Sequence record: MN563784.1
DNA length: 64,000 nucleotides
Direction: 5' to 3' (one strand)
The position numbers were made by a program, and so were the translations under genes. Positions 3,492-59,298 of the stretch are shown here, one piece after another. Position 1 is the first letter of the stretch; the number at the start of each line of letters is the position of its first letter. The notes beneath the pieces were generated by a model. It saw only the letters and a list, made by a program, of their open reading frames with translations, did no database searches and had not been told where the DNA came from.

Positions 3492-5780
3492 TTAAAGAGT
3501 GCACGAACCGCCTGCACACCCAACTTCAGTATTAGTTACCTCAACAGCACGTTCAAGTGATTTAATATCAAGTCCTGCTGCTGTTTCTAGATTTACATAA
3601 TACCGGGTTTTCATTCCACGTTTCACCATGTAGAAGTGATTACCTAGCATTTCATTAGAAGAGATCTTTTCAGAACCTACAATGCGTCGGTAGAGGTCCG
3701 CACTGATTGTTTGATCAGTCCACTTTTGAATAATGGCATAGCAATCAATAAGATCTTTAGTGGGGATATCATAAGCTGATTCATACACATAGGAGTCATC
3801 ATCTCCATATGGAGCAGCCCATAGCACACGTGCACCATTATCAGTCTTATTAAGAATTAGGCGACGTACCGGGTATGGACCATTAGTTGACCCTAGTGCC
3901 TTAGATGATGCTTCACCAGGCATGTATGCAGCTAGTACGGAGTGTGCAATACCACCATTCTCCTTAATTTCTTTCTCTAGCTCATCCCATGGATAAAGTT
4001 CTTCAAAGCCACCTTCAATGATAGTATCCACTGACTTATTATAAGTCTTACGTGGAGTCCATCCCTCTGGCCATTTAGTCTTATGAATCCAAGGCGCATT
4101 CCCGCGTTCTTTAGAAATCTTAAGTGACGCCTTGATAAGGAAGTACATATGCCGTTCAGCAATGAAGTGGATTTCAGCTTTACCAGCATCGCTGCTATAT
4201 TTAAGGCCAGCACGTGCCATATGTGTGGCTAGACCCATGATACCAACACCAGCACTCATTCGATTCTTAGCGGTTAGTGCAAGGTGTGGGAAAGCATACT
4301 CTGCATTAAGGATACAATAGTCAATCATCTTAAGTGCGTAGTAAGCCGCCATTTCATAAGTTTGCTTATCAGGAACGTTATCCACTGCAATAGCAGCCAG
4401 TGAACAAGTAGCAATCTCACCGCGCCCGTGATCCTCACTAGAATAAAGATCTTCCATTCGATAGTAAGGCTTAGTGGGTTCTGCGATTTCAAGGCATAGG
4501 TTAGAACTGTAAATAGGTTCTTTAAATGGTGTATGATGATTGAGTTCATCAATTTGAGCTGAATAGATGGTTCCAGTCTCATATGCTTCAACTAGCATTG
4601 ATTTGAGAAGATCCCGAGCATTTACATAAGTTTTCTCAAATTTAGGATCCGCTTCATATTTTTCATAAAGCTTAATAAACTTATCAATATCACCACTATA
4701 GAAAGCATCATGTAGATCTGGAGCAGTAAATGGATTGAATACAAAGATCATGCCATCTTTCTGAGCCGCTTTCTTAGCAAAGAACTTATTACTTAGGAAT
4801 GCATAGTGAAGATCACGGTTCTTCCTATCCTCAGTAGAACGTGGATTACGTAGCTGAGTAATCATATCTGCTTCAGGATCGAAAGCACTGTAGTAACACG
4901 TAACAGCACCACCTCGACCATTTTGTAGGTTAGCCCTTACTGCTTTACCAATTACATCGATGTATGGTTTCTTACCTTGGTGAATGATTAGGCCATTACG
5001 GATAGGATCACCAATTGACCTAGTCATTAAGTTAACACCAATGCCTGCTGATGATTGGGTCATGATGTTAGCAATATAATCGCCCATTGCCAGTGATACA
5101 CCATTATCACCAGAAGCAAATAGGCAACATGATGCAAAACCACGAAGCTTAGTACCTAGGTTAACGTAGTTAGGTGTTGGCGCACTAAGAATTTTATTAG
5201 AAAGTAGTTTATAGTAATTCTCCACATGAGTCATGCGAGTTTCAGCTGGCTCTTTTTCAGCTAGAGCCATTGCCATTCGCATATATACAAACTGGGCAGT
5301 CTCATATTCTTGACCAGTTTTACGATTACGTAGAGCATACTTTCCACGAATGTGATGAAGTGAAAAATGCGGACAAAGTAGGTCAAGATCGTGATCAATG
5401 ATCTTTTCAATCTGAGTGTATTCTTTACTACTATAATCTAATTTAACAATGATACCATCTTTACGCATCCTGGTTTGAAGCGCTTTAACAGTTGGGATGC
5501 CATTTAGACCATAGAACTTCTTACGAAGATAAATCGCATATAGTCTACCAGCCATTAGATAATAAGACCATGTCTTACGATTTAAACATTCTTCAATAAG
5601 TTGTAATTGTAGTTCTTGTGATGAAGTTTTATCACCAAGAGCTTGAACAGCATCCATCACAACACTACTCCAATCCACCTTATCGCCAAGATGTTGGGCT
5701 GCCCATTCACCCCAACCATTAATCTTAGCAGGTGAGTATGCTTCTTCAGTACCGTCTAGTTTAATGATAGTTTTTAACAT
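3492..5780 (-). CDS. nrdA: Ribonucleotide reductase class I alpha subunit
   Basis: N-terminal ATP-cone-like (IIKLDGTEE), TPNYVNLG, ASCCL, SSNLCLEI, C-terminal CxxxxC. Start placed at ATG 5780 instead of track start 5831. Confidence 0.95.
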   Translation of the reverse strand: MLKTIIKLDGTEEAYSPAKINGWGEWAAQHLGDKVDWSSVVMDAVQALGDKTSSQELQLQLIEECLNRKTWSYYLMAGRLYAIYLRKKFYGLNGIPTVKALQTRMRKDGIIVKLDYSSKEYTQIEKIIDHDLDLLCPHFSLHHIRGKYALRNRKTGQEYETAQFVYMRMAMALAEKEPAETRMTHVENYYKLLSNKILSAPTPNYVNLGTKLRGFASCCLFASGDNGVSLAMGDYIANIMTQSSAGIGVNLMTRSIGDPIRNGLIIHQGKKPYIDVIGKAVRANLQNGRGGAVTCYYSAFDPEADMITQLRNPRSTEDRKNRDLHYAFLSNKFFAKKAAQKDGMIFVFNPFTAPDLHDAFYSGDIDKFIKLYEKYEADPKFEKTYVNARDLLKSMLVEAYETGTIYSAQIDELNHHTPFKEPIYSSNLCLEIAEPTKPYYRMEDLYSSEDHGRGEIATCSLAAIAVDNVPDKQTYEMAAYYALKMIDYCILNAEYAFPHLALTAKNRMSAGVGIMGLATHMARAGLKYSSDAGKAEIHFIAERHMYFLIKASLKISKERGNAPWIHKTKWPEGWTPRKTYNKSVDTIIEGGFEELYPWDELEKEIKENGGIAHSVLAAYMPGEASSKALGSTNGPYPVRRLILNKTDNGARVLWAAPYGDDDSYVYESAYDIPTKDLIDCYAIIQKWTDQTISADLYRRIVGSEKISSNEMLGNHFYMVKRGMKTRYYVNLETAAGLDIKSLERAVEVTNTEVGCAGGSCTL

Positions 5781-6124
5781 TGTTAATTTCCAATTGTGAG
5801 TCGTAAGTTCATGTGAAAAAGTATTCAACATATCTTTAGATCAACTAAGTATTTTTACGACCCATTTTAAATGAATTTAGTTGATCTATTGTAAAAGCAT
5901 ATTATGGTACATTGGATATCTTTATCTTAAAAACCTCTGTAGCCTTAGTGCCTTAAGGGTTACAGCTATATAGTCCAATATCGTTCTACCATGCTATTTA
6001 AGAGCTTTAAATAATAACCCACTATGTACCCTTAGGTTTTATTTTATCAACAATATAGCTTAAAATAGAAATATACCTAAGTGCTTTTTACTATACTACT
6101 ATTATTTATCGGAGTTAATTAAGA

Positions 6125-6514
6125 ATGTCTTTTTATCTACCGAAATACACCGATCCAATTGAAGCAATCGAATGGAAAAAGAACGGTGATATACCTGGTG
6201 ATGGCGTTATCAATAATATCAACCAAGGTGCTATTGTTGGTTATGCTATACCTACTAAAGAGTCTACTCTTAGTAATGCGATTTGCCCATTATGTAATCT
6301 AACTGAATCTAGTCATGGTATTTTACGTGTAGGCCCAGATAAAGATAAAATTGTCTGTCCGGGTGATTTTATTATTTTAATTCGTAAAAATAATGGGCGT
6401 ATACTAGATTACAAATTAATGCGTCAACGTGAATTTAATAAACTTTATCAACTGGTAACAAAAGAGGAAGCTAAACAATGGGTAATGATGTTGGATCCAG
6501 AAAAGAAGGACTAA
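6125..6514 (+). CDS. Hypothetical phage protein with putative Zn ligands (CPLC...HG...VCPGDFII)
   Basis: SD ggag upstream; motif pattern. Confidence 0.7.
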   Translation: MSFYLPKYTDPIEAIEWKKNGDIPGDGVINNINQGAIVGYAIPTKESTLSNAICPLCNLTESSHGILRVGPDKDKIVCPGDFIILIRKNNGRILDYKLMRQREFNKLYQLVTKEEAKQWVMMLDPEKKD

Positions 6515-7062
6515 AGTTATATGAAGCTTTAGTTGAGGATATAATCATCACCAATGATCTTGGTACTGGTCTTCGACCATCTCTTAATATAACCACTAAT
6601 GATGGTGTAACTAGGAATGTTACATTTGATCAACTTGAGAATTTTATTAAAGTTATAAAAGCCACGCATGATACGCAAACTGTTGGCACTCCATTACAAT
6701 GGTGTATTTACAGGTATGCTCCTAATTTAGTTAAAGCTCGGTATATTGCAACTAGTTGGAAAATAACTGTAGACCATGTTAAAAAGACTTTGAATTTTCA
6801 AGGTACTTTAAATCACGAAGGTACTGTAATTGATCATCCTAACTATGATCCAGATATTACCGCAAGAGAACTAATGTTCGATGAAACTATTACTGATTTT
6901 AGTCGATTTGAACAAATTGCTCTGTCTGGAAATATCGCTAACTTTAAAGAAGAATTCAAAATGATGAAATATAGTTTTGACTTTAGTTACATTATTGAAG
7001 TTAGTAATGGCATGACTAGACTCAAGGAGTTAGCTAATGATCAAACTGGATTATCAGATTAA
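6478..7062 (+). CDS. Probable nuclear-shell-associated protein ChmB (phiKZ gp2-like); start uncertain
   Basis: Position equals phiKZ gp2 (two genes before DHFR), size about 190 aa, LQWC motif; assignment from memory. Confidence 0.5.
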   Translation: MGNDVGSRKEGLKLYEALVEDIIITNDLGTGLRPSLNITTNDGVTRNVTFDQLENFIKVIKATHDTQTVGTPLQWCIYRYAPNLVKARYIATSWKITVDHVKKTLNFQGTLNHEGTVIDHPNYDPDITARELMFDETITDFSRFEQIALSGNIANFKEEFKMMKYSFDFSYIIEVSNGMTRLKELANDQTGLSD

Positions 7063-7543
7063 ATCAGAAGTCAATCATCTATTAAATAGATTATTAGTTA
7101 AAAACTTAGATGGCACTGTTTATTTTAGAACAACTATTAAAGAAGACGATTTAAAAGACTTACCTGTTAATCTGATTAGCCTACAAGTACTTATAAATCT
7201 ATTGATAGGTTATGAAGGACTAGATATTACAACTAATATTGAGGAATTCACACAGCAGATTAGTCTGATTCTTTGGGACATGCCCATACTAGAAAAAGGC
7301 GAAGTGGAATACCTCTATATTGAACAAGATATTAAGTTGAATGAATTAGTTATTAAACATAAAAGACCTGGTGTATTAATTGATGAGAAAGTATATGGTG
7401 AATTAACGCTATTACAAATGGCTCAAATTAATTACCTATTAGCGTCTACATTTAAGTTTAAAACTAATTTCACTTGCTGTAGTTGGGCTATTGAATTTAA
7501 AGATAATGAAGTATCTTGTAAATTCTGGCCTAAGGAAAATTGA
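7037..7543 (+). CDS. Hypothetical protein
   Basis: 168 aa ORF coupled to neighbours. Confidence 0.7.
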   Translation: MIKLDYQIKSEVNHLLNRLLVKNLDGTVYFRTTIKEDDLKDLPVNLISLQVLINLLIGYEGLDITTNIEEFTQQISLILWDMPILEKGEVEYLYIEQDIKLNELVIKHKRPGVLIDEKVYGELTLLQMAQINYLLASTFKFKTNFTCCSWAIEFKDNEVSCKFWPKEN

Positions 7544-8064
7544 TGGCTATTAAATTAATCGTTGCCCATGACCTAAATGGTGTCATTGGATATAATAATC
7601 TATTACCTTGGCATATACCTGAGGATTTAGCTTTCTTTAAAGAAATGACAACTGGTTGCTGTGTTATCATGGGTAAAAATACTTTCTTATCCTTAGGTAG
7701 TAAACCGTTACCTAATCGTAATAACATTGTTGTATCATCAAGTTTATATCGTAACGGTAATTACCCAGTATCCTGTGATAATAAATTAGGTGTACTCCCT
7801 AATCTAGATGCGGCTCTTGTATATGCTGATCATTTTAGTAAAGAAACTAAAAAGGATGTATGGGCCATTGGTGGTTCTCAACTTTATAAAGAAGCCATTA
7901 AAAAGGATATTTTAGACGAAATGTACATTACTACTGTCAAGATGGAAATCGATAATAGTAGTTGTGTTTATTTCCCTAAAGAAATCATTAAATGGGATAA
8001 ATGGAAATCAACCATTATTAAAGAAACAGATTTGTGTAAATATACACGTTGGATTAAAACATAA
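7540..8064 (+). CDS. folA: Dihydrofolate reductase
   Basis: IGYNNLLPWHIPEDLAFFKEMT, VIMGKNTF, PLPNRNNIVVS, IGGSQLY. Confidence 0.95.
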   Translation: MMAIKLIVAHDLNGVIGYNNLLPWHIPEDLAFFKEMTTGCCVIMGKNTFLSLGSKPLPNRNNIVVSSSLYRNGNYPVSCDNKLGVLPNLDAALVYADHFSKETKKDVWAIGGSQLYKEAIKKDILDEMYITTVKMEIDNSSCVYFPKEIIKWDKWKSTIIKETDLCKYTRWIKT

Positions 8065-55420: not shown

Positions 55421-55745
55421 AGGAAATACCTCGGTAGATAGGGATGTTAAATAAGTAACATCCCGATTCTAATACTGCGACCCTGGTTCACTTCGGTGAT
55501 AACGGTTAGGAGTAGGTTCCGTGAAGTAATCGACTAGTGGACTTAGTCTAGGTCGACCTATCACTACACGAGGATGATAGATCACTTAACCGAAAGGAGT
55601 TACTCAAAAGGTGACGTGTGATCAAAAACTACAATGGATGGTAAATGATACTAGTGCCGGTATGCTACAGAGAAGAGCGGAGGTTAAGCTTTGTAGATGA
55701 CGCTAGGATCGGGCCAGGCTCCGTTGGTGGTCCATTGTAAAAACT
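55421..55745 (+). ncRNA. Candidate structured non-coding RNA (or chmA 3' UTR), family unassigned
   Basis: No ORF of 60 aa or more on +; at least six stems including a 9 bp long-range helix; closed by terminator. Confidence 0.55.
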
Positions 55746-55789
55746 GATATAGCGGCTCCTTCGGGGGCCGCTTATATCTCCTTTTTTTG
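55746..55789 (+). terminator. Intrinsic terminator, UUCG loop
   Basis: agcggctcc-ttcg-ggggccgct then ttttttt. Confidence 0.85.
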
Positions 55790-55813
55790 TTAATCGATAA
55801 ATAGGAGTTTGGT

Positions 55814-56950
55814 ATGGGTCTTTATGCCAAAGTTGTTGATCATAATGAAGTTCATGATCAATTTACGGGTAAACGAATTTATGCCAATGATTACAATACG
55901 AGTAACTCAGATGAGAAAGAAGAATTTGATAGGCATTTCTATTCTCATTTCCAAGATTCAGAAGCAATTGAAAGTAGTGTAAGCTGTGATTGTCGAGCAA
56001 TCGAAGACGCACATAAACTCGGAGTAATCTGTGATATTTGTAATACTCCAGTTGTCAATACTTCTAGCCGTCCTATCGAACCATCAATGTGGGTTCGTAC
56101 ACCAAAACATGTACGTAGCCTAATTAACCCACGTTTAATCATTATGCTAACCGGATATCTAGTAACTAAAGAATTCGATTTCTTAGCATATCTAACTGAT
56201 ACTTCTTATCGATACGATGTAGAATCTATTGGTTCTAAGGAAACACGCAGGAAAGTAGATAGGCTACTGCATCGAGGATTTGAAAGAGGATTAAATCACT
56301 TCATTGATAATTTCAATGAGATCTTCCAATTCCTACTAGATGCAAATATTATCTCTAATAATAAATCCGAATTCGCTCAATTCGTTGCTCAGAATAAAGA
56401 TAAGTTATTCCCTAAATATTTACCAGTTCCTTCTAAACTCTGTTTCGTAGCAGAATCAACCACATCTGGTACTTACTTAGATAAACCAATTGAAGCAGCA
56501 ATTGATGCTACCTTAACCTTCGCTAGTATTGATGCATCATCTGTACCACTTAGTCCAATTAAAGCTCAGAATAGGACTATGCGAGGACTAAGACTATATG
56601 GCCAGTTCTACGAGATCTACGCAAAATCACGAATTGCTCAAAAGCCTGGTCTTGCTCGGCGTCACATGTTTGGTGCTCGTCTCAACGCTACGGCACGTGC
56701 AGTAATCACTTCTATTAGTGACCCGCATGATTATGATGAACTACATATCCCTTGGGGGGTAGGTTGTCAATTATTAAAGTATCATCTAACCAATAAACTA
56801 AAAGCAAAGTTTAACATGACAACTCGTGAAGCATTCTCATTTGTATATGAGAATGTACTTCAATATAACCAAATCATTGCAGATCTATTTAAAGAGCTAA
56901 TTGCAGAAGCAGCCCCTTATAAAGGGATGGGTTGTACTTTTCACCGAAAT
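55814..56950 (+). CDS. Non-virion RNA polymerase beta-prime-like subunit (gp55), exon 1
   Basis: Zn-binding CxC...CxxC, RRHMFGAR..ATARAVI (beta-prime region C); ends at FHRN with TAA immediately after. Confidence 0.9.
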
Positions 56951-58144
56951 TAATTTAGTTAGGAAAAAAAGCATTTGACTAGGGTGTGGCGCCTGATGTC
57001 ACTAACAGTGAGGAAATATGGATGAAGAATTAGACTGGCGAAAAATACCTGGTTTTAGTCGTTATGAAATTAATCAGTTCGGTATAGTGCGTAACTTAAA
57101 CCATGATATTATCTCACAACATGAGAATAAATCATCTAAAGGTACATACTTGACTGTTAACATCATTAACGATAAAGGTGAGAGAAAGATAAGATATCCG
57201 CATAGATTTGTATGTATGGTATTTAATGGATTGCCAGATAATCCTGATGATTGGGATGTAAACCATAAAGATACGAATAAGCATAATAACTATTATCGTA
57301 ATCTGGAATGGATAACACATAGTGGCAATGTCAAACATGCTTTTATAACAGGTGCGAATAAACATGCCCTTTCTGTAAAATGTACAGATGTAATAACTAA
57401 GGAAGTATGGAACTTCATCTCAATGAAAGAAGTTGCAGAATTCCTTGAACTGAAACATAAGAAAGGTTTACATGTAGTTCTTGCACACACTGAAAAACCA
57501 TATAACGGGCGTTATATTTTTGAGGTAACGGGTGAATACCATCCGCAACAAAGAAAGAATGCAATTGAAGTTTATTGCATTGATTTTAAAACAGGTACAT
57601 TCTATCGAGCAGTAAACCTTACTGATCTCCAATTAAAAACAGGATTGATTAAAGGTACTATCCAAGATATCCTGAAGAAACGCGATCTTCGAGTTTTTAA
57701 TGGAGTAGTTGTCTGTAAGGTTGAGGATAAGGAACGGTTATTCGAATACGTTTCTAAACTCACCCAAACTGAGATAGATGAATCTATAGAGAAATACAAT
57801 CGTTATCAAATGCTTAAAACACTACGGTGCGCCACCAAGAGCCGTAAGTGACCCTAACCAATGGTTTCCTTGTAATAGAAATATTACTCGACAAAACTCC
57901 TTTAATTGCTGGAACATCTCACTGAGACAATCAGCAGCGAAGCCTATTAGAAATAATAGGAACGTTCAACGACTATCGAAAGGCACGAAAGTGAACCGAG
58001 TAGAGTAGAGTCAAGTGACTCGAAATGGGGAGCACCTTACTGGGTAATGCCAAAGGTGAAGATATAGTCTGGTCTGCATGGTGACATGCAGCTGTCTATT
58101 ATTAATAGACGGGATAAGCTTAACGAACTTATCTGAACACAACG
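56951..58144 (+). mobile_element. Group I intron 1 (1194 nt) carrying an HNH endonuclease
   Basis: Follows exon U, ends in G; P aattgctggaa 57904, Q aatcagcagc 57929, R gttcaacgacta 57964, S aagatatagtc 58059; splicing restores HRN|PTLQRGS. Confidence 0.9.
57018..57851 (+). CDS. Intron-encoded HNH homing endonuclease (NUMOD4-HNH, I-HmuI-like)
   Basis: WRKIPGFSRYEINQFG (NUMOD4-like), HRFVC...VNHKDTNKHNNYYRNLEW (HNH); SD gagga. Confidence 0.9.
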   Translation: MDEELDWRKIPGFSRYEINQFGIVRNLNHDIISQHENKSSKGTYLTVNIINDKGERKIRYPHRFVCMVFNGLPDNPDDWDVNHKDTNKHNNYYRNLEWITHSGNVKHAFITGANKHALSVKCTDVITKEVWNFISMKEVAEFLELKHKKGLHVVLAHTEKPYNGRYIFEVTGEYHPQQRKNAIEVYCIDFKTGTFYRAVNLTDLQLKTGLIKGTIQDILKKRDLRVFNGVVVCKVEDKERLFEYVSKLTQTEIDESIEKYNRYQMLKTLRCATKSRK

Positions 58145-58252
58145 CCGACCCTTCAACGTGGATCTACTCAACAATTCTTTATTACTAAAGTAAAAGATGA
58201 CATTAATGATAATTCAATCAGCATGTCAGTATTATGCCTTAAAGCGCCTAAT
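58145..58252 (+). CDS. nvRNAP beta-prime exon 2 (36 codons; not in ORF track)
   Basis: PTLQRGSTQQFFITKVKDDINDNSISMSVLCLKAPN, equivalent to the NRxPTLHR region leading up to NADFDGD. Confidence 0.88.
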
Positions 58253-58750
58253 GGACAAGTAACTAACTAAATAAGGTAAAAACAATGGAACAAAACGGAG
58301 TAGTGTCCGTCTTTGATCCGGCTTTATTTAAAATTGAATATGAAGTGCTTGATAAATACCTTATTAAGTTAATCAAGTCTAGTTCCCCCAGTGAGTAATC
58401 ATTGGGGTGAGTTCTCTCTAATTGCTGGGATATCCTGTTAAACTAATCTACCACTGCGAGTCGAAAGACAAAGCCAAGGTTTGAAAAAAGATTAGGTAGG
58501 GCCAATCAGCAGCCAAGCTCCGTAACATTCCATTTAGGAATAGGAGAAGGTTCAACGACTATTACGGTATCAGGTGCACCGGTCCTAGAAATAGGATGTA
58601 GGGTCAAGTGACTCGAAATGGGAGACACCCCACTCCGAAAGGAAGGGTGAAGATATAGTCTGGTCTGCATGGTGACATGCAGCAGGTGGTAATTATCATG
58701 TGGTAATTATACTACCGGGTATGGATTAACGACCCATACTGAACATAACG
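58253..58750 (+). mobile_element. Group I intron 2 (498 nt), no endonuclease
   Basis: P 58420, Q 58504, R 58550, S 58650; ends gaacataacg like intron 1 (gaacacaacg); splicing restores N|ADFDGD. Confidence 0.88.
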
Positions 58751-58969
58751 GCGGATTTTGACGGCGATCAATTGAATTTAACGTTAATGCCTGACGTGTA
58801 TTTAACTAAAGCAACTGAACGCATTGCTCCACATACATGGGTTCTATCTATTGATGAACCACATGAAATCTCAGGTAACCTTGAATTACAGGGTCCTGTT
58901 GTAGAAACAATTATTAACTGGGCACATGAGAAGTATTTACCACCATTAGAAGAGTGGTTGAAGTCGTAA
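58751..58969 (+). CDS. nvRNAP beta-prime exon 3 with catalytic ADFDGD
   Basis: GCG GAT TTT GAC GGC GAT CAA, in frame with track ORF 58772-58969. Confidence 0.9.
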   Translation, partial: ADFDGDQLNLTLMPDVYLTKATERIAPHTWVLSIDEPHEISGNLELQGPVVETIINWAHEKYLPPLEEWLKS

Positions 58970-59109
58970 TAATAAACTTGCCCCTACCACTTATGTAGTA
59001 GGGGCTTTATTTCCTGTTATGGCAGCGCCTAACTATGGATGTAAAGTTCCACTGGATTTAATTTCAGATTTATATCACTAAGATGCAATAGTGATAAGGG
59101 GAATACCCA

Positions 59110-59298
59110 ATGTCTAATATTCGTGAAATTATTCGACGTAACCCGGAATGTTTATCACAAGTCGAACGAGATGAACGTGAAGCCAGATCGGTAGCCGTAT
59201 TAACTAAGAGATATATTACTCGCGGGAATGGTGATGTAGTGGTAAACAGAAGGTTTGTCGATGCATATGTCGAAATGATCTCTAAGCTTAATGATTAA
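59110..59298 (+). CDS. Small hypothetical protein
   Basis: SD aagggga; promoter variant TATATCAC at 59071. Confidence 0.65.
   Translation: MSNIREIIRRNPECLSQVERDEREARSVAVLTKRYITRGNGDVVVNRRFVDAYVEMISKLND

Follow-up and report, generated by a model that had tools for sequence, protein, structure and literature searches.

How does a phage obtain an active RNA polymerase from a gene whose reading frame stops before the catalytic aspartates are encoded? The question is raised by sequence record MN563784.1, from the phiKZ-like Pseudomonas phage vB_PA32_GUMS (GUMS), of which we analyzed a stretch of 64,000 nt (the window). In the window, the homolog of phiKZ gp55, which is the N-terminal half of the β′ subunit of the non-virion RNA polymerase (nvRNAP) and contains the catalytic double-psi β-barrel, is split into three pieces; all features described below lie on the plus strand. 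A first-pass annotation, made from the letters alone, had proposed that two group I introns separate the pieces. We consider it highly probable that the gp55 homolog is interrupted by two mobile group I introns, is spliced to a 487-residue subunit, and owes these introns to homing.

Three Exon Pieces Tile the Catalytic Chain of the phiKZ Polymerase

Exon 1 (55814–56950, taken from the ORF list) encodes 379 residues with the C terminus CTFHRN and is followed directly by a TAA stop codon at 56951–56953, just as the first-pass annotation had described. Exon 2 (58145–58252) comprises 108 nt, or 36 residues, PTLQRGSTQQFFITKVKDDINDNSISMSVLCLKAPN (PTLQRGS...LKAPN), and has neither a start codon nor a ribosome-binding site of its own. 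Exon 3 (58751–58969) encodes 72 residues (58751–58966) plus the stop codon, starts with ADFDGDQLNLTL (ADFDGDQ...), and carries all three Mg-binding aspartates; 417-DFDGD-421 is the catalytic motif of the phiKZ nvRNAP structure (PMC8287921). When searched separately, the three pieces are each 100% identical to PDB 7OGP chain A, which is phiKZ gp55 (label 'PHIKZ055 ... PHIKZ056.1'), at residues 21–399, 400–435, and 436–506, respectively, and they tile the chain with zero gap and zero overlap. The proposal that removal of 56951–58144 and 58253–58750 yields a protein of 379 + 36 + 72 = 487 residues is thereby borne out, and the calculated mass of this protein is 55.6 kDa. Indeed, in the intronless homologs from 201phi2-1 (gp107) and BRkr, the sequence ...FHRNPTLQRGST...CLKAPNADFDGDQLN... 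(HRNPTL...KAPNADFDGDQ) runs unbroken across both junctions, in agreement with the claim that splicing rebuilds the HRNPTL segment and the NADFDGD loop, and exon 2 is contiguous with exon 1 in phiKZ, T2P, and PA7. The intron-less alleles and the PDB chain provide independent definitions of the intron boundaries. Without splicing, as also anticipated, the RNA gives only the 379-residue protein, which has no catalytic aspartates.

None of this is apparent from the public annotation. In MN563784, exon 1 by itself bears the label 'putative non-virion DNA-dependent RNA polymerase subunit', and neither an intron nor exon 2 was found in this GenBank record, in line with the expectation that standard ORF callers would miss exon 2. 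The other records inspected likewise list the gp55 pieces as separate small genes.

The protein made by phiKZ itself offers a point of reference. Native phiKZ nvRNAP contains gp55 at 56 kDa (PMC4666361), to be compared with calculated masses of 55.6 kDa for the spliced product and 47.9 kDa for an unspliced read-through of the phiKZ type; this agreement gives indirect support for self-splicing, at site 2 only (the N415|A416 junction, see below). An earlier RNA-seq study is cited in PMC11512511 as revealing the gp55 intron of phiKZ, and ONT-cappable-seq of phiKZ gave no spliced reads for the predicted introns under the conditions used (PMC10914365).

Both Insertions Contain Complete Group I Ribozyme Cores

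Both insertions cover positions 1–253 of the 253-position Rfam model RF00028 (Intron_gpI), intron 1 at 57846–58091 with 95 bits (E = 3e-23, window-wide) and intron 2 at 58361–58682 with 78 bits (E = 4e-18), scores that are far above the gathering score of 50 bits. The P, Q, R, and S elements named in the first-pass annotation could be located in both, at 57904–57912, 57929–57938, 57964–57975, and 58059–58069 within the catalytic core of intron 1 (P2 to P9, 57846–58091), and at 58420–58428, 58504–58513, 58550–58561, and 58650–58660 in intron 2. Also as first described, each intron follows a U (T56950 for intron 1, T58252 for intron 2), ends in a terminal guanosine (ωG; G58144 and G58750), and is in phase 0. 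The 3′ ends of the two introns are near-identical to each other. In the Rfam alignment, both carry an insertion of 48–55 nt between P7 and the 3′ strand of P3; extra P7.1/P7.2 helices in this position mark subgroup IA2, which is typical of phage group I introns. The first hairpin of the Rfam alignment contains many non-canonical pairs in both introns and was rejected as P1 or P2, and direct duplex searches were therefore used instead. A P10 pairing was sought by eye, and no convincing one was seen for either intron. We rejected an intein, a programmed frameshift, and separate subunits as explanations of the split gene, given that exon 2 is startless and that the inserted segments are RNA ribozymes in which every relevant frame contains stop codons.

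Intron 1 Harbors an HNH Endonuclease Gene in the Loop of P1

Intron 1 (56951–58144; site 1, N379|P380) is 1194 nt long, and exactly this segment is absent from phiKZ and T2P. Its P1 helix is formed by a 5′ strand at 56946–56963, made up of the last five exon bases (GAAAU) and the first 13 intron bases, and a 3′ strand at 57853–57868 that holds the internal guide sequence GUUUC (57864–57868), with a duplex energy of −11.3 kcal/mol (RNAduplex). G56946–U56950 pair with C57868–G57864, placing a U56950-G57864 wobble at the splice site, and the helix extends through 56951–56963 against 57853–57863. ORF-less versions of the site-1 intron, 305 nt in length, occur in Bobae and KEN19; in the Bobae allele, 14 nt stand in place of 56957–57859 and the same P1 is a simple hairpin. 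Furthermore, the P2 and P9 hairpins show compensatory changes between GUMS-type and KTN4-type site-1 alleles. This comparison, an RNAalifold prediction from five site-1 alleles, was used solely for P2 and P9 as local hairpins, and the overall consensus was discarded because MAFFT misaligned the middle (at the KTN4-lineage insertion) and the predicted structure does not reproduce the actual pseudoknotted group I fold.

Within L1, the terminal loop of P1, lies a gene (57018–57851) for a 277-residue, I-HmuI-like HNH protein, preceded by its own GAGG ribosome-binding site. The protein matches Pfam HNH_3 (E = 3.5e-7, 30.2 bits with a cutoff of 24.8) and PDB 1U3E (E = 2e-5), the structure of I-HmuI, which is the endonuclease of the phage SPO1 DNA polymerase intron. 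The HNH nuclease module of I-HmuI aligns with the N-terminal 110 of the 277 residues, whereas overall similarity is low and the DNA-binding C-terminal part is not recognizably shared. Identity is 73% to the KTN4 site-1 endonuclease and 35% to phiKZ gp56. The NUMOD4 N-terminal motif, matched by the KTN4 homolog, falls below the Pfam threshold in the GUMS protein, and no NUMOD1, which gp56 has, was detected in it by Pfam. The gene is intact, and its product would presumably be an active homing endonuclease.

The site-1 introns of KTN4, SL2, OMKO1, fnug, ANB1, and fMGyn-Pae01 share the insertion point and the architecture of intron 1, with the endonuclease gene in the P1 loop and the core downstream. 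These KTN4-type introns form a second lineage, with about 81% nucleotide identity to the GUMS intron and an extra insertion in the P5/P6 region. Every record inspected is without an intron annotation of the site-1 element, and a limited literature search found no published description of it, which need not mean that the literature holds none. The first-pass annotation had equated the known HNH-containing intron of phiKZ with the first intron of the window. This assignment is wrong: the phiKZ gp56 intron is at site 2, and phiKZ reads straight through site 1. Intron 1 is the additional element, absent from phiKZ and, as far as we found, previously undescribed.

Intron 2 Corresponds to the phiKZ gp56 Intron

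Intron 2 (58253–58750; site 2, N415|A416) is a 498-nt, ORF-less intron located one codon ahead of the DFDGD aspartates. The phiKZ gp55/gp56/gp56.1 intron lies in the same gene at the same insertion point and has the same ribozyme, with about 92% identity in the core and 94% over exon 2 and the intron's 5′ end; it scores 75.6 bits with Rfam, and its ligated product is the PDB 7OGP chain. The phiKZ copy is 1372 nt long and includes gp56, whereas the copy in the window has lost about 890 nt of the HNH gene. A 37-residue mini-ORF (58285–58398) remains, whose first 13 and last 15 residues correspond to the two termini of phiKZ gp56; Pfam recognizes no domain in it, although MN563784 mislabels it as 'HNH homing endonuclease', and its stop codon sits in the GUAA loop of the intron 2 P2 hairpin (58386–58407). 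The mini-ORF is what an internal deletion, in frame, has left of a gp56-type HNH gene, and intron 2 is the known phiKZ gp56 intron in a reduced form. A long-range 14-bp helix (58264–58278 with 58357–58371; RNAduplex, −14.4 kcal/mol) closes off the ORF remnant. The candidate P1 of intron 2, next to this helix, is weak, with three exon base pairs read by eye (U58252-G58382, A58251-U58383, and A58250-U58384) and a tentative continuation, also by eye, of 58253–58256 with 58377–58380. A match to Spot 42 at 58332–58416, inside the intron, is attributed to chance (20 bits, with the gathering score at 80; E = 0.66).

Intron Occupancy and Exon Mosaicism among Relatives

Presence or absence of the introns across relatives, which the first-pass annotation had named as a check on its proposal, proves to be polymorphic. 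Of 44 Phikzvirus genomes, about 17 have an intron at site 1 and the other 27 or so do not; the lengths at this site are 0, 276–350, or 1194–1250 nt, with and without an ORF, and those at site 2 are 0, 481–498, or 1372 nt. Relatives have a third insertion site just after NADFDGD, which PA7, OMKO1, and fnug use in place of site 2, and KEN49 has an intron at each of the three, with an exon of 18 nt between two of them. phiKZ is without intron 1, PA7 is without introns 1 and 2, and 201phi2-1 and BRkr have no intron in this gene; for every site, empty alleles occur in phages with gp55 proteins that differ by 0–3 residues. Further insertion sites are present in LucasX and Goslar. In the phiPA3-like phages phiLBG22 and PS119XW, identity of the site-3 intron is 92%, as against only about 81% for the segment of protein encoded. 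The HNH endonucleases linked to the gp55 sites fall into at least three distinct lineages, introns are found both with and without endonuclease genes, and one intron is common to different genera. With at least three group I sites in Phikzvirus, the 43-codon stretch around NADFDGD is an insertion hotspot.

The exons themselves are mosaic. Compared with KTN4, PA7, and KEN49, the window has no differences in the 3′-terminal 337 nt of exon 1 and 9–11 in the 108 nt of exon 2; compared with T2P, Bobae, and KEN19, it has none in the 108 nt of exon 2 and 9–10 in 100 nt of the exon 1 tail. The gp55 proteins across these mosaics differ by only 0–3 residues, and a recombination breakpoint is located at intron 1. 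Clusters of synonymous changes at sites 2 and 3 co-vary with intron occupancy: alleles without a site-2 or site-3 intron have such clusters exactly at those sites. At site 1, the intron-less alleles of phiKZ and PA7 keep the same flanks, and the T2P junction has AAC instead of AAT. Because the sites are empty in near-identical phages, the endonuclease is variable, and the exons are mosaic, the pattern points to selfish homing elements and not to a conserved regulator.

Discussion

We propose that the GUMS gp55 homolog harbors two mobile group I introns that are related to each other but were inserted independently, intron 1 being a complete ribozyme whose P1 loop holds an intact I-HmuI-like HNH gene. 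The pre-mRNA would self-splice twice in vivo, each reaction being initiated by guanosine and the internal guide sequence holding the 5′ exon via a U-G wobble, and would thereby join exons of 379, 36, and 72 residues into the 55.6-kDa subunit. The introns would be present in gp55 because their endonucleases target the conserved DNA of the active site, and they would have been moved by homing during co-infection of P. aeruginosa.

The public annotations, with their separate small genes, could instead be taken at face value, the insertion or insertions not being spliced and gp55 being either a pseudogene or a subunit built from separately translated pieces. The long-read phiKZ transcriptome mentioned above (PMC10914365) would fit such a reading, as would PaZh_1, which has a 29-nt deletion in the site-1 core and no Rfam match there. 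Yet both cores in the window are complete, with scores like those of phiKZ and other viable phages, and exon 2 offers no start codon or ribosome-binding site for translation by itself. The exons are moreover under strong purifying selection (0–3 amino-acid changes against up to 10% synonymous change), and the catalytic loop would be split in two in an essential polymerase whose native phiKZ subunit has a mass of 56 kDa (PMC4666361); we regard a broken or divided gene as scarcely credible. A regulatory role, as suggested by the first-pass annotation, would have the introns retained as a gate, with the efficiency or timing of splicing setting the appearance of active nvRNAP and thus middle and late transcription. 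The introns do interrupt an essential early gene whose product is required for late transcription (PMC10612078), and conditional splicing of T4 introns and the idea of a 'molecular on-switch' have been discussed for phage introns (PMC10914365; PMC11878797). In a variant of this reading, skipping of exon 2, which is in frame as the first-pass annotation had calculated, might add a catalytically dead, possibly dominant-negative subunit. Skipping between adjacent group I introns is known in phages Twort and SIOphi and in Bastillevirinae (PMC11878797), the two introns here share near-identical 3′ ends, and a figure legend in PMC10612078 reports phiKZ gp55 as two migrating bands. A timing device would be expected to be conserved, however, whereas the endonuclease is present or deleted or the site is empty altogether, and every site has empty alleles in phages of the same lifestyle whose gp55 protein is essentially identical. 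The proposed control of middle and late transcription is accordingly unsupported by the comparison of relatives, and we judge the gate to be improbable. A related thought is that, because transcription and splicing are separated from translation in a nucleus-forming phage, the two ribozyme reactions (three in KEN49) could be a checkpoint on nvRNAP production. Skipping of the 108-nt exon could then yield a catalytically dead 51.6-kDa subunit that competes for assembly, and intron load could tune the early-to-late switch or the life history of a strain; to this, too, we give little credence.

A role in interference competition deserves more weight, although we still think it rather unlikely. On top of selfish homing, the intron 1 endonuclease would benefit its phage by nicking the nvRNAP gene of co-infecting intron-less phiKZ-like phages, and recoded exon flanks would confer immunity. 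There is a precedent in PhiPA3 gp210, an intron-encoded HNH nickase in the virion RNAP (vRNAP) gene that cripples phiKZ (PMC11620839), and the endonuclease in the window belongs to the same I-HmuI-like class. The synonymous clusters lie exactly at empty sites 2 or 3, and at site 1 some intron-less alleles (phiKZ, PA7) have unaltered flanks, with AAC for AAT at the T2P junction. Nevertheless, co-conversion with divergent donors predicts such clusters equally well, and the enzyme would need access to the phage nucleus of the competitor, which was a barrier in the PhiPA3/phiKZ case (PMC12908238). Competition of this kind would supplement splicing and homing of the two introns, our preferred explanation, and not replace it.

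Several known systems resemble this locus. Two or three group I introns per gene are reported (PMC11878797; Landthaler & Shub 1999) for Twort orf142 (three introns) and for the DNA polymerase, terminase, and RNR genes of Bastillevirinae, likewise with short exons between the introns and potential exon skipping as a side product; those are other genes and hosts, whereas the target here is the active site of a multisubunit RNAP in a nucleus-forming jumbo phage. The PhiPA3 gp210 intron, like that of GUMS, places an HNH nicking endonuclease beside the catalytic aspartates of a jumbo-phage RNAP gene (PMC11620839). It does so at another site, in the β-subunit gene of the virion RNAP, and a competitive function has been shown for gp210, that of the GUMS protein being hypothetical.

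The introns leave the understanding of group I intron mechanism unchanged, and offer an opportunity to study how group I introns would splice when exons are very short (108 nt here and 18 nt in KEN49). In every phiKZ-like record inspected, the annotation of the catalytic nvRNAP subunit is wrong, showing a shortened 'RNA polymerase' ORF with stray small ORFs and no exon 2; these records include OMKO1 and KTN4, phages used or proposed for therapy, and the error affects the design of gene knockdowns, proteomics databases, and comparative genomics. Following the result with PhiPA3 gp210, the gp55 introns offer a natural system in which to study the effects of endonucleases on competition and recombination among co-infecting jumbo phages.

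The gp55 gene and its predicted spliced product

The region 55700-59100 of the window is 100% identical to Pseudomonas phage vB_PA32_GUMS (MN563784; GUMS), a Phikzvirus, and the gene starting at 55814, with the nuclear shell protein gene immediately upstream, is a homolog of phiKZ gp55, the N-terminal half of the beta-prime-like subunit of the non-virion RNA polymerase (nvRNAP). Both the catalytic double-psi beta-barrel and the motif that binds Mg, 417-DFDGD-421, are part of gp55 (PMC8287921). As the first-pass annotation had proposed, the exon 1 ORF ends in ...CTFHRN at 56950 with TAA directly after it, and removal of two introns restores HRNPTL and NADFDGD in a 487-aa protein. Queried singly against solved structures, the translations of exon 1 (55814-56950, 379 aa), exon 2 (58145-58252, 36 aa) and exon 3 (58751-58966, 72 aa) match residues 21-399, 400-435 and 436-506 of 7OGP_A (phiKZ 'PHIKZ055 ... 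PHIKZ056.1') at 100% identity, with neither gap nor overlap. Residues 1-20 of 7OGP_A, upstream of the exon match, are presumably a tag, and native gp55 would thus be 487 aa long. In 201phi2-1 gp107 and BRkr, which are full-length homologs lacking introns, the sequence runs ...FHRNPTLQRGST...CLKAPNADFDGDQLN... uninterrupted. Unspliced RNA would encode a calculated 43.4-kDa fragment only, lacking the catalytic aspartates as had been predicted. The suspicion that exon 2 and the second intron might have escaped annotation was also correct: none of the GenBank/RefSeq Phikzvirus records inspected marks exon 2 or any gp55 intron. Downstream of gp55, a 332-nt segment (58958-59289) found in T2P and Bobae and missing from phiKZ contains a 62-aa ORF (59110-59298), preceded by a terminator-like hairpin at ~58980-59010.

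Two group I introns

The Rfam group I intron model (gathering score 50 bits) gives full-length plus-strand matches at 57846-58091 (95 bits) and 58361-58682 (78 bits), bearing out the group I assignment, and detects no other group I intron in the 64-kb window. Both introns contain P, Q, R and S blocks, follow a U, end in G and are in phase 0. Their P7-P9 segments (58005-58092 and 58598-58683) share ~86% identity. A 38-45-nt piece around the S element is matched at 95-97% in the unrelated Pectobacterium phages phiTE and CB7 and Escherichia phages 18-1-2 and TH18, at unannotated sites that are presumably also group I introns. Megablast with the intron region returned one additional match per genome, in phiKZ as well, elsewhere in the record and outside the window; it probably represents the related intron of either the gp71-73 nvRNAP gene or a vRNAP gene.

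Intron 1 (56951-58144, 1194 nt) interrupts the gene between N379 and P380 (site 1), and exactly this segment is missing from phiKZ and T2P. It carries a 277-aa HNH_3 ORF (57018-57851) matching I-HmuI (PDB 1U3E). The assumption that this HNH-bearing intron is the one known from phiKZ has to be reversed: site 1 is empty in phiKZ, intron 1 is the additional element, and its protein is only 35% identical to phiKZ gp56. In a duplex prediction, P1 pairs exon nucleotides G56946-U56950 with the guide G57864-C57868, including the diagnostic U-G wobble, and the helix extends into the intron, so the endonuclease gene occupies the terminal loop of P1. In Bobae and KEN19, 14 nt replace 903 nt including the ORF, and the same P1 forms a simple hairpin.

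The phiKZ gp56 HNH gene and its ribozyme lie at site 2, between N415 and A416, where the window has intron 2 (58253-58750, 498 nt). The annotated phiKZ gp55 is a 420-aa ORF of exon 1, exon 2 and five read-through codons. With ~92% core identity and a comparable Rfam score, intron 2 is, by sequence, the same element as the gp56 intron, from which ~890 nt of gp56 have been deleted in frame. The deletion leaves a 37-aa mini-ORF (58285-58398) built from the two ends of gp56, and the mini-ORF stop codon falls within the loop, GUAA, of the P2 hairpin.

Occupancy of three sites among relatives

Presence or absence across relatives, proposed as a check, varies at every site. We scored occupancy by exon-anchored comparison of 13 loci and record spans for all hits; the site-1 totals, for ~44 distinct Phikzvirus genomes, derive partly from record spans, and AttikonH10 was assigned by analogy with KEN19. 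Site 1 is empty in ~27 genomes (phiKZ, PA7, T2P and others), holds the window's endonuclease gene in two (GUMS and Churi) or a second-lineage endonuclease with 73% aa identity in six (KTN4, SL2, OMKO1, fnug, ANB1 and fMGyn-Pae01), and is ORF-less, at 276-350 nt, in ~9 (Bobae, KEN19, KEN49, PaZh_1 and others). No homolog in the sample listed outside Phikzvirus is interrupted there. The PaZh_1 intron (locus L010, MN871489, flagged 'UNVERIFIED_ORG', 4001-4276) has a 29-nt deletion removing the P element and part of P4/P5, and has no Rfam match; if the deletion is not an assembly error, an essential gene here contains a ribozyme that would be expected not to splice. Site 2 among Phikzvirus holds either a 1372-nt intron with gp56 or an ORF-less form of 481-498 nt, and is empty in PA7, OMKO1 and fnug.

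These three phages (loci L012 5109-6650, L008 and L013, respectively) instead have a third related intron of ~1524 nt (Rfam 74.8 bits), inserted as GAT/...G/CAA directly after NADFDGD, between D421 and Q422 (site 3). Site 3 lies 18 nt downstream of site 2, and an I-HmuI-like HNH gene follows the intron core. As read from the sequence, GGAGAU in PA7-type alleles shows full complementarity, a U-G wobble included, to a GUCUCC immediately within the site-3 intron. In KEN49 (locus L011, PP456877, 5501-7737), all three sites are filled and give three Rfam matches: intron 1 (5501-5850), exon 2 (5851-5958), intron 2 (5959-7331), an 18-nt exon encoding only ADFDGD between two predicted group I introns (7332-7349), and intron 3 (7350-7737). 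No Phikzvirus genome examined has all three sites empty.

Footprints of probable mobility

The gp55 proteins differ at 0-3 of 487 residues, and their DNA is mosaic. Over the 3'-terminal 337 nt of exon 1, the window shows no differences from KTN4, SL2, KEN49, PA7 and fnug, but 9-11 of 108 in exon 2; against T2P, Bobae, KEN19 and PaZh_1, exon 2 is identical and the 3'-terminal 100 nt of exon 1 differ at 9-10 positions. These opposite affinities indicate a recombination breakpoint coinciding with intron 1. Furthermore, synonymous codons beside sites 2 and 3 vary with occupancy: exon 2 ends in CCTAAT in all site-2-occupied alleles and CCAAAC in empty ones, and site 3 reads GGAGAT/CAACTT when occupied and GGCGAT/CAATTG when empty.

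The site-3 intron is 92% identical to copies at the equivalent gp55-homolog position in the phiPA3-like phages phiLBG22 (OU343167, 44671-45006) and PS119XW (MN103543/NC_070882, 44613-44948), both with genomes of ~302 kb; their relative BRkr is intronless. Because the encoded protein segment is only ~81% identical, this suggests recent transfer between Phikzvirus and phiPA3-like phages.

Splicing and its possible roles

Most likely, production of the 55.6-kDa subunit requires the early gp55 pre-mRNA to be spliced twice, in group I reactions that are independent of each other. Splicing at site 2 is supported by gp55 at 56 kDa in native phiKZ nvRNAP (PMC4666361) and by the use of the ligated sequence for structures. 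For site 1 the support is indirect: the ribozyme is complete, and phages carrying it are viable.

Splicing had also been proposed to time middle and late transcription by regulating the appearance of nvRNAP. We found nothing in support, and each intron is freely present or absent among near-identical phages, which argues against a conserved regulatory role. What keeps this proposal open is that spliced phiKZ reads went undetected in one long-read study (PMC10914365), that exons are skipped in other multi-intron phage genes (PMC11878797), and that, according to a figure legend, phiKZ Gp55 gives two bands in Western blots (PMC10612078, Figure 1). One possible explanation for the bands is the spliced 55.6-kDa product and an unspliced 47.9-kDa read-through product. 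Interference competition, demonstrated for PhiPA3 gp210 (PMC11620839), would by analogy be a more plausible added function than such timing.

The site-2 intron was already known from the paper on the phiKZ genome, according to citations in PMC10914365 and PMC11512511. At least in the literature searched, the site-1 intron appears undescribed, as does the view of the NADFDGD loop as a hotspot with three insertion sites. It is well known that conserved phage genes can harbor group I introns encoding HNH endonucleases, and there is equal precedent for several introns per gene, for short internal exons and for derivatives that lack the ORF.

The same loop is interrupted in distant chimalliviruses at yet other positions, between ...LKA and PNADFDGD in Xanthomonas phage LucasX (locus L017 1845-2268, Rfam 54.7 bits) and after ...GYNADF in E. 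coli phage Goslar (locus L016 1857-3267), where an HNH gene accompanies an Intron_gpI feature annotated in the record. The catalytic loop looks like a recurrent target across genera. Homing driven by their HNH endonucleases most likely maintains these introns. The states among relatives match the classical homing cycle, with invaded sites, introns that have lost the endonuclease gene, and sites that are empty.
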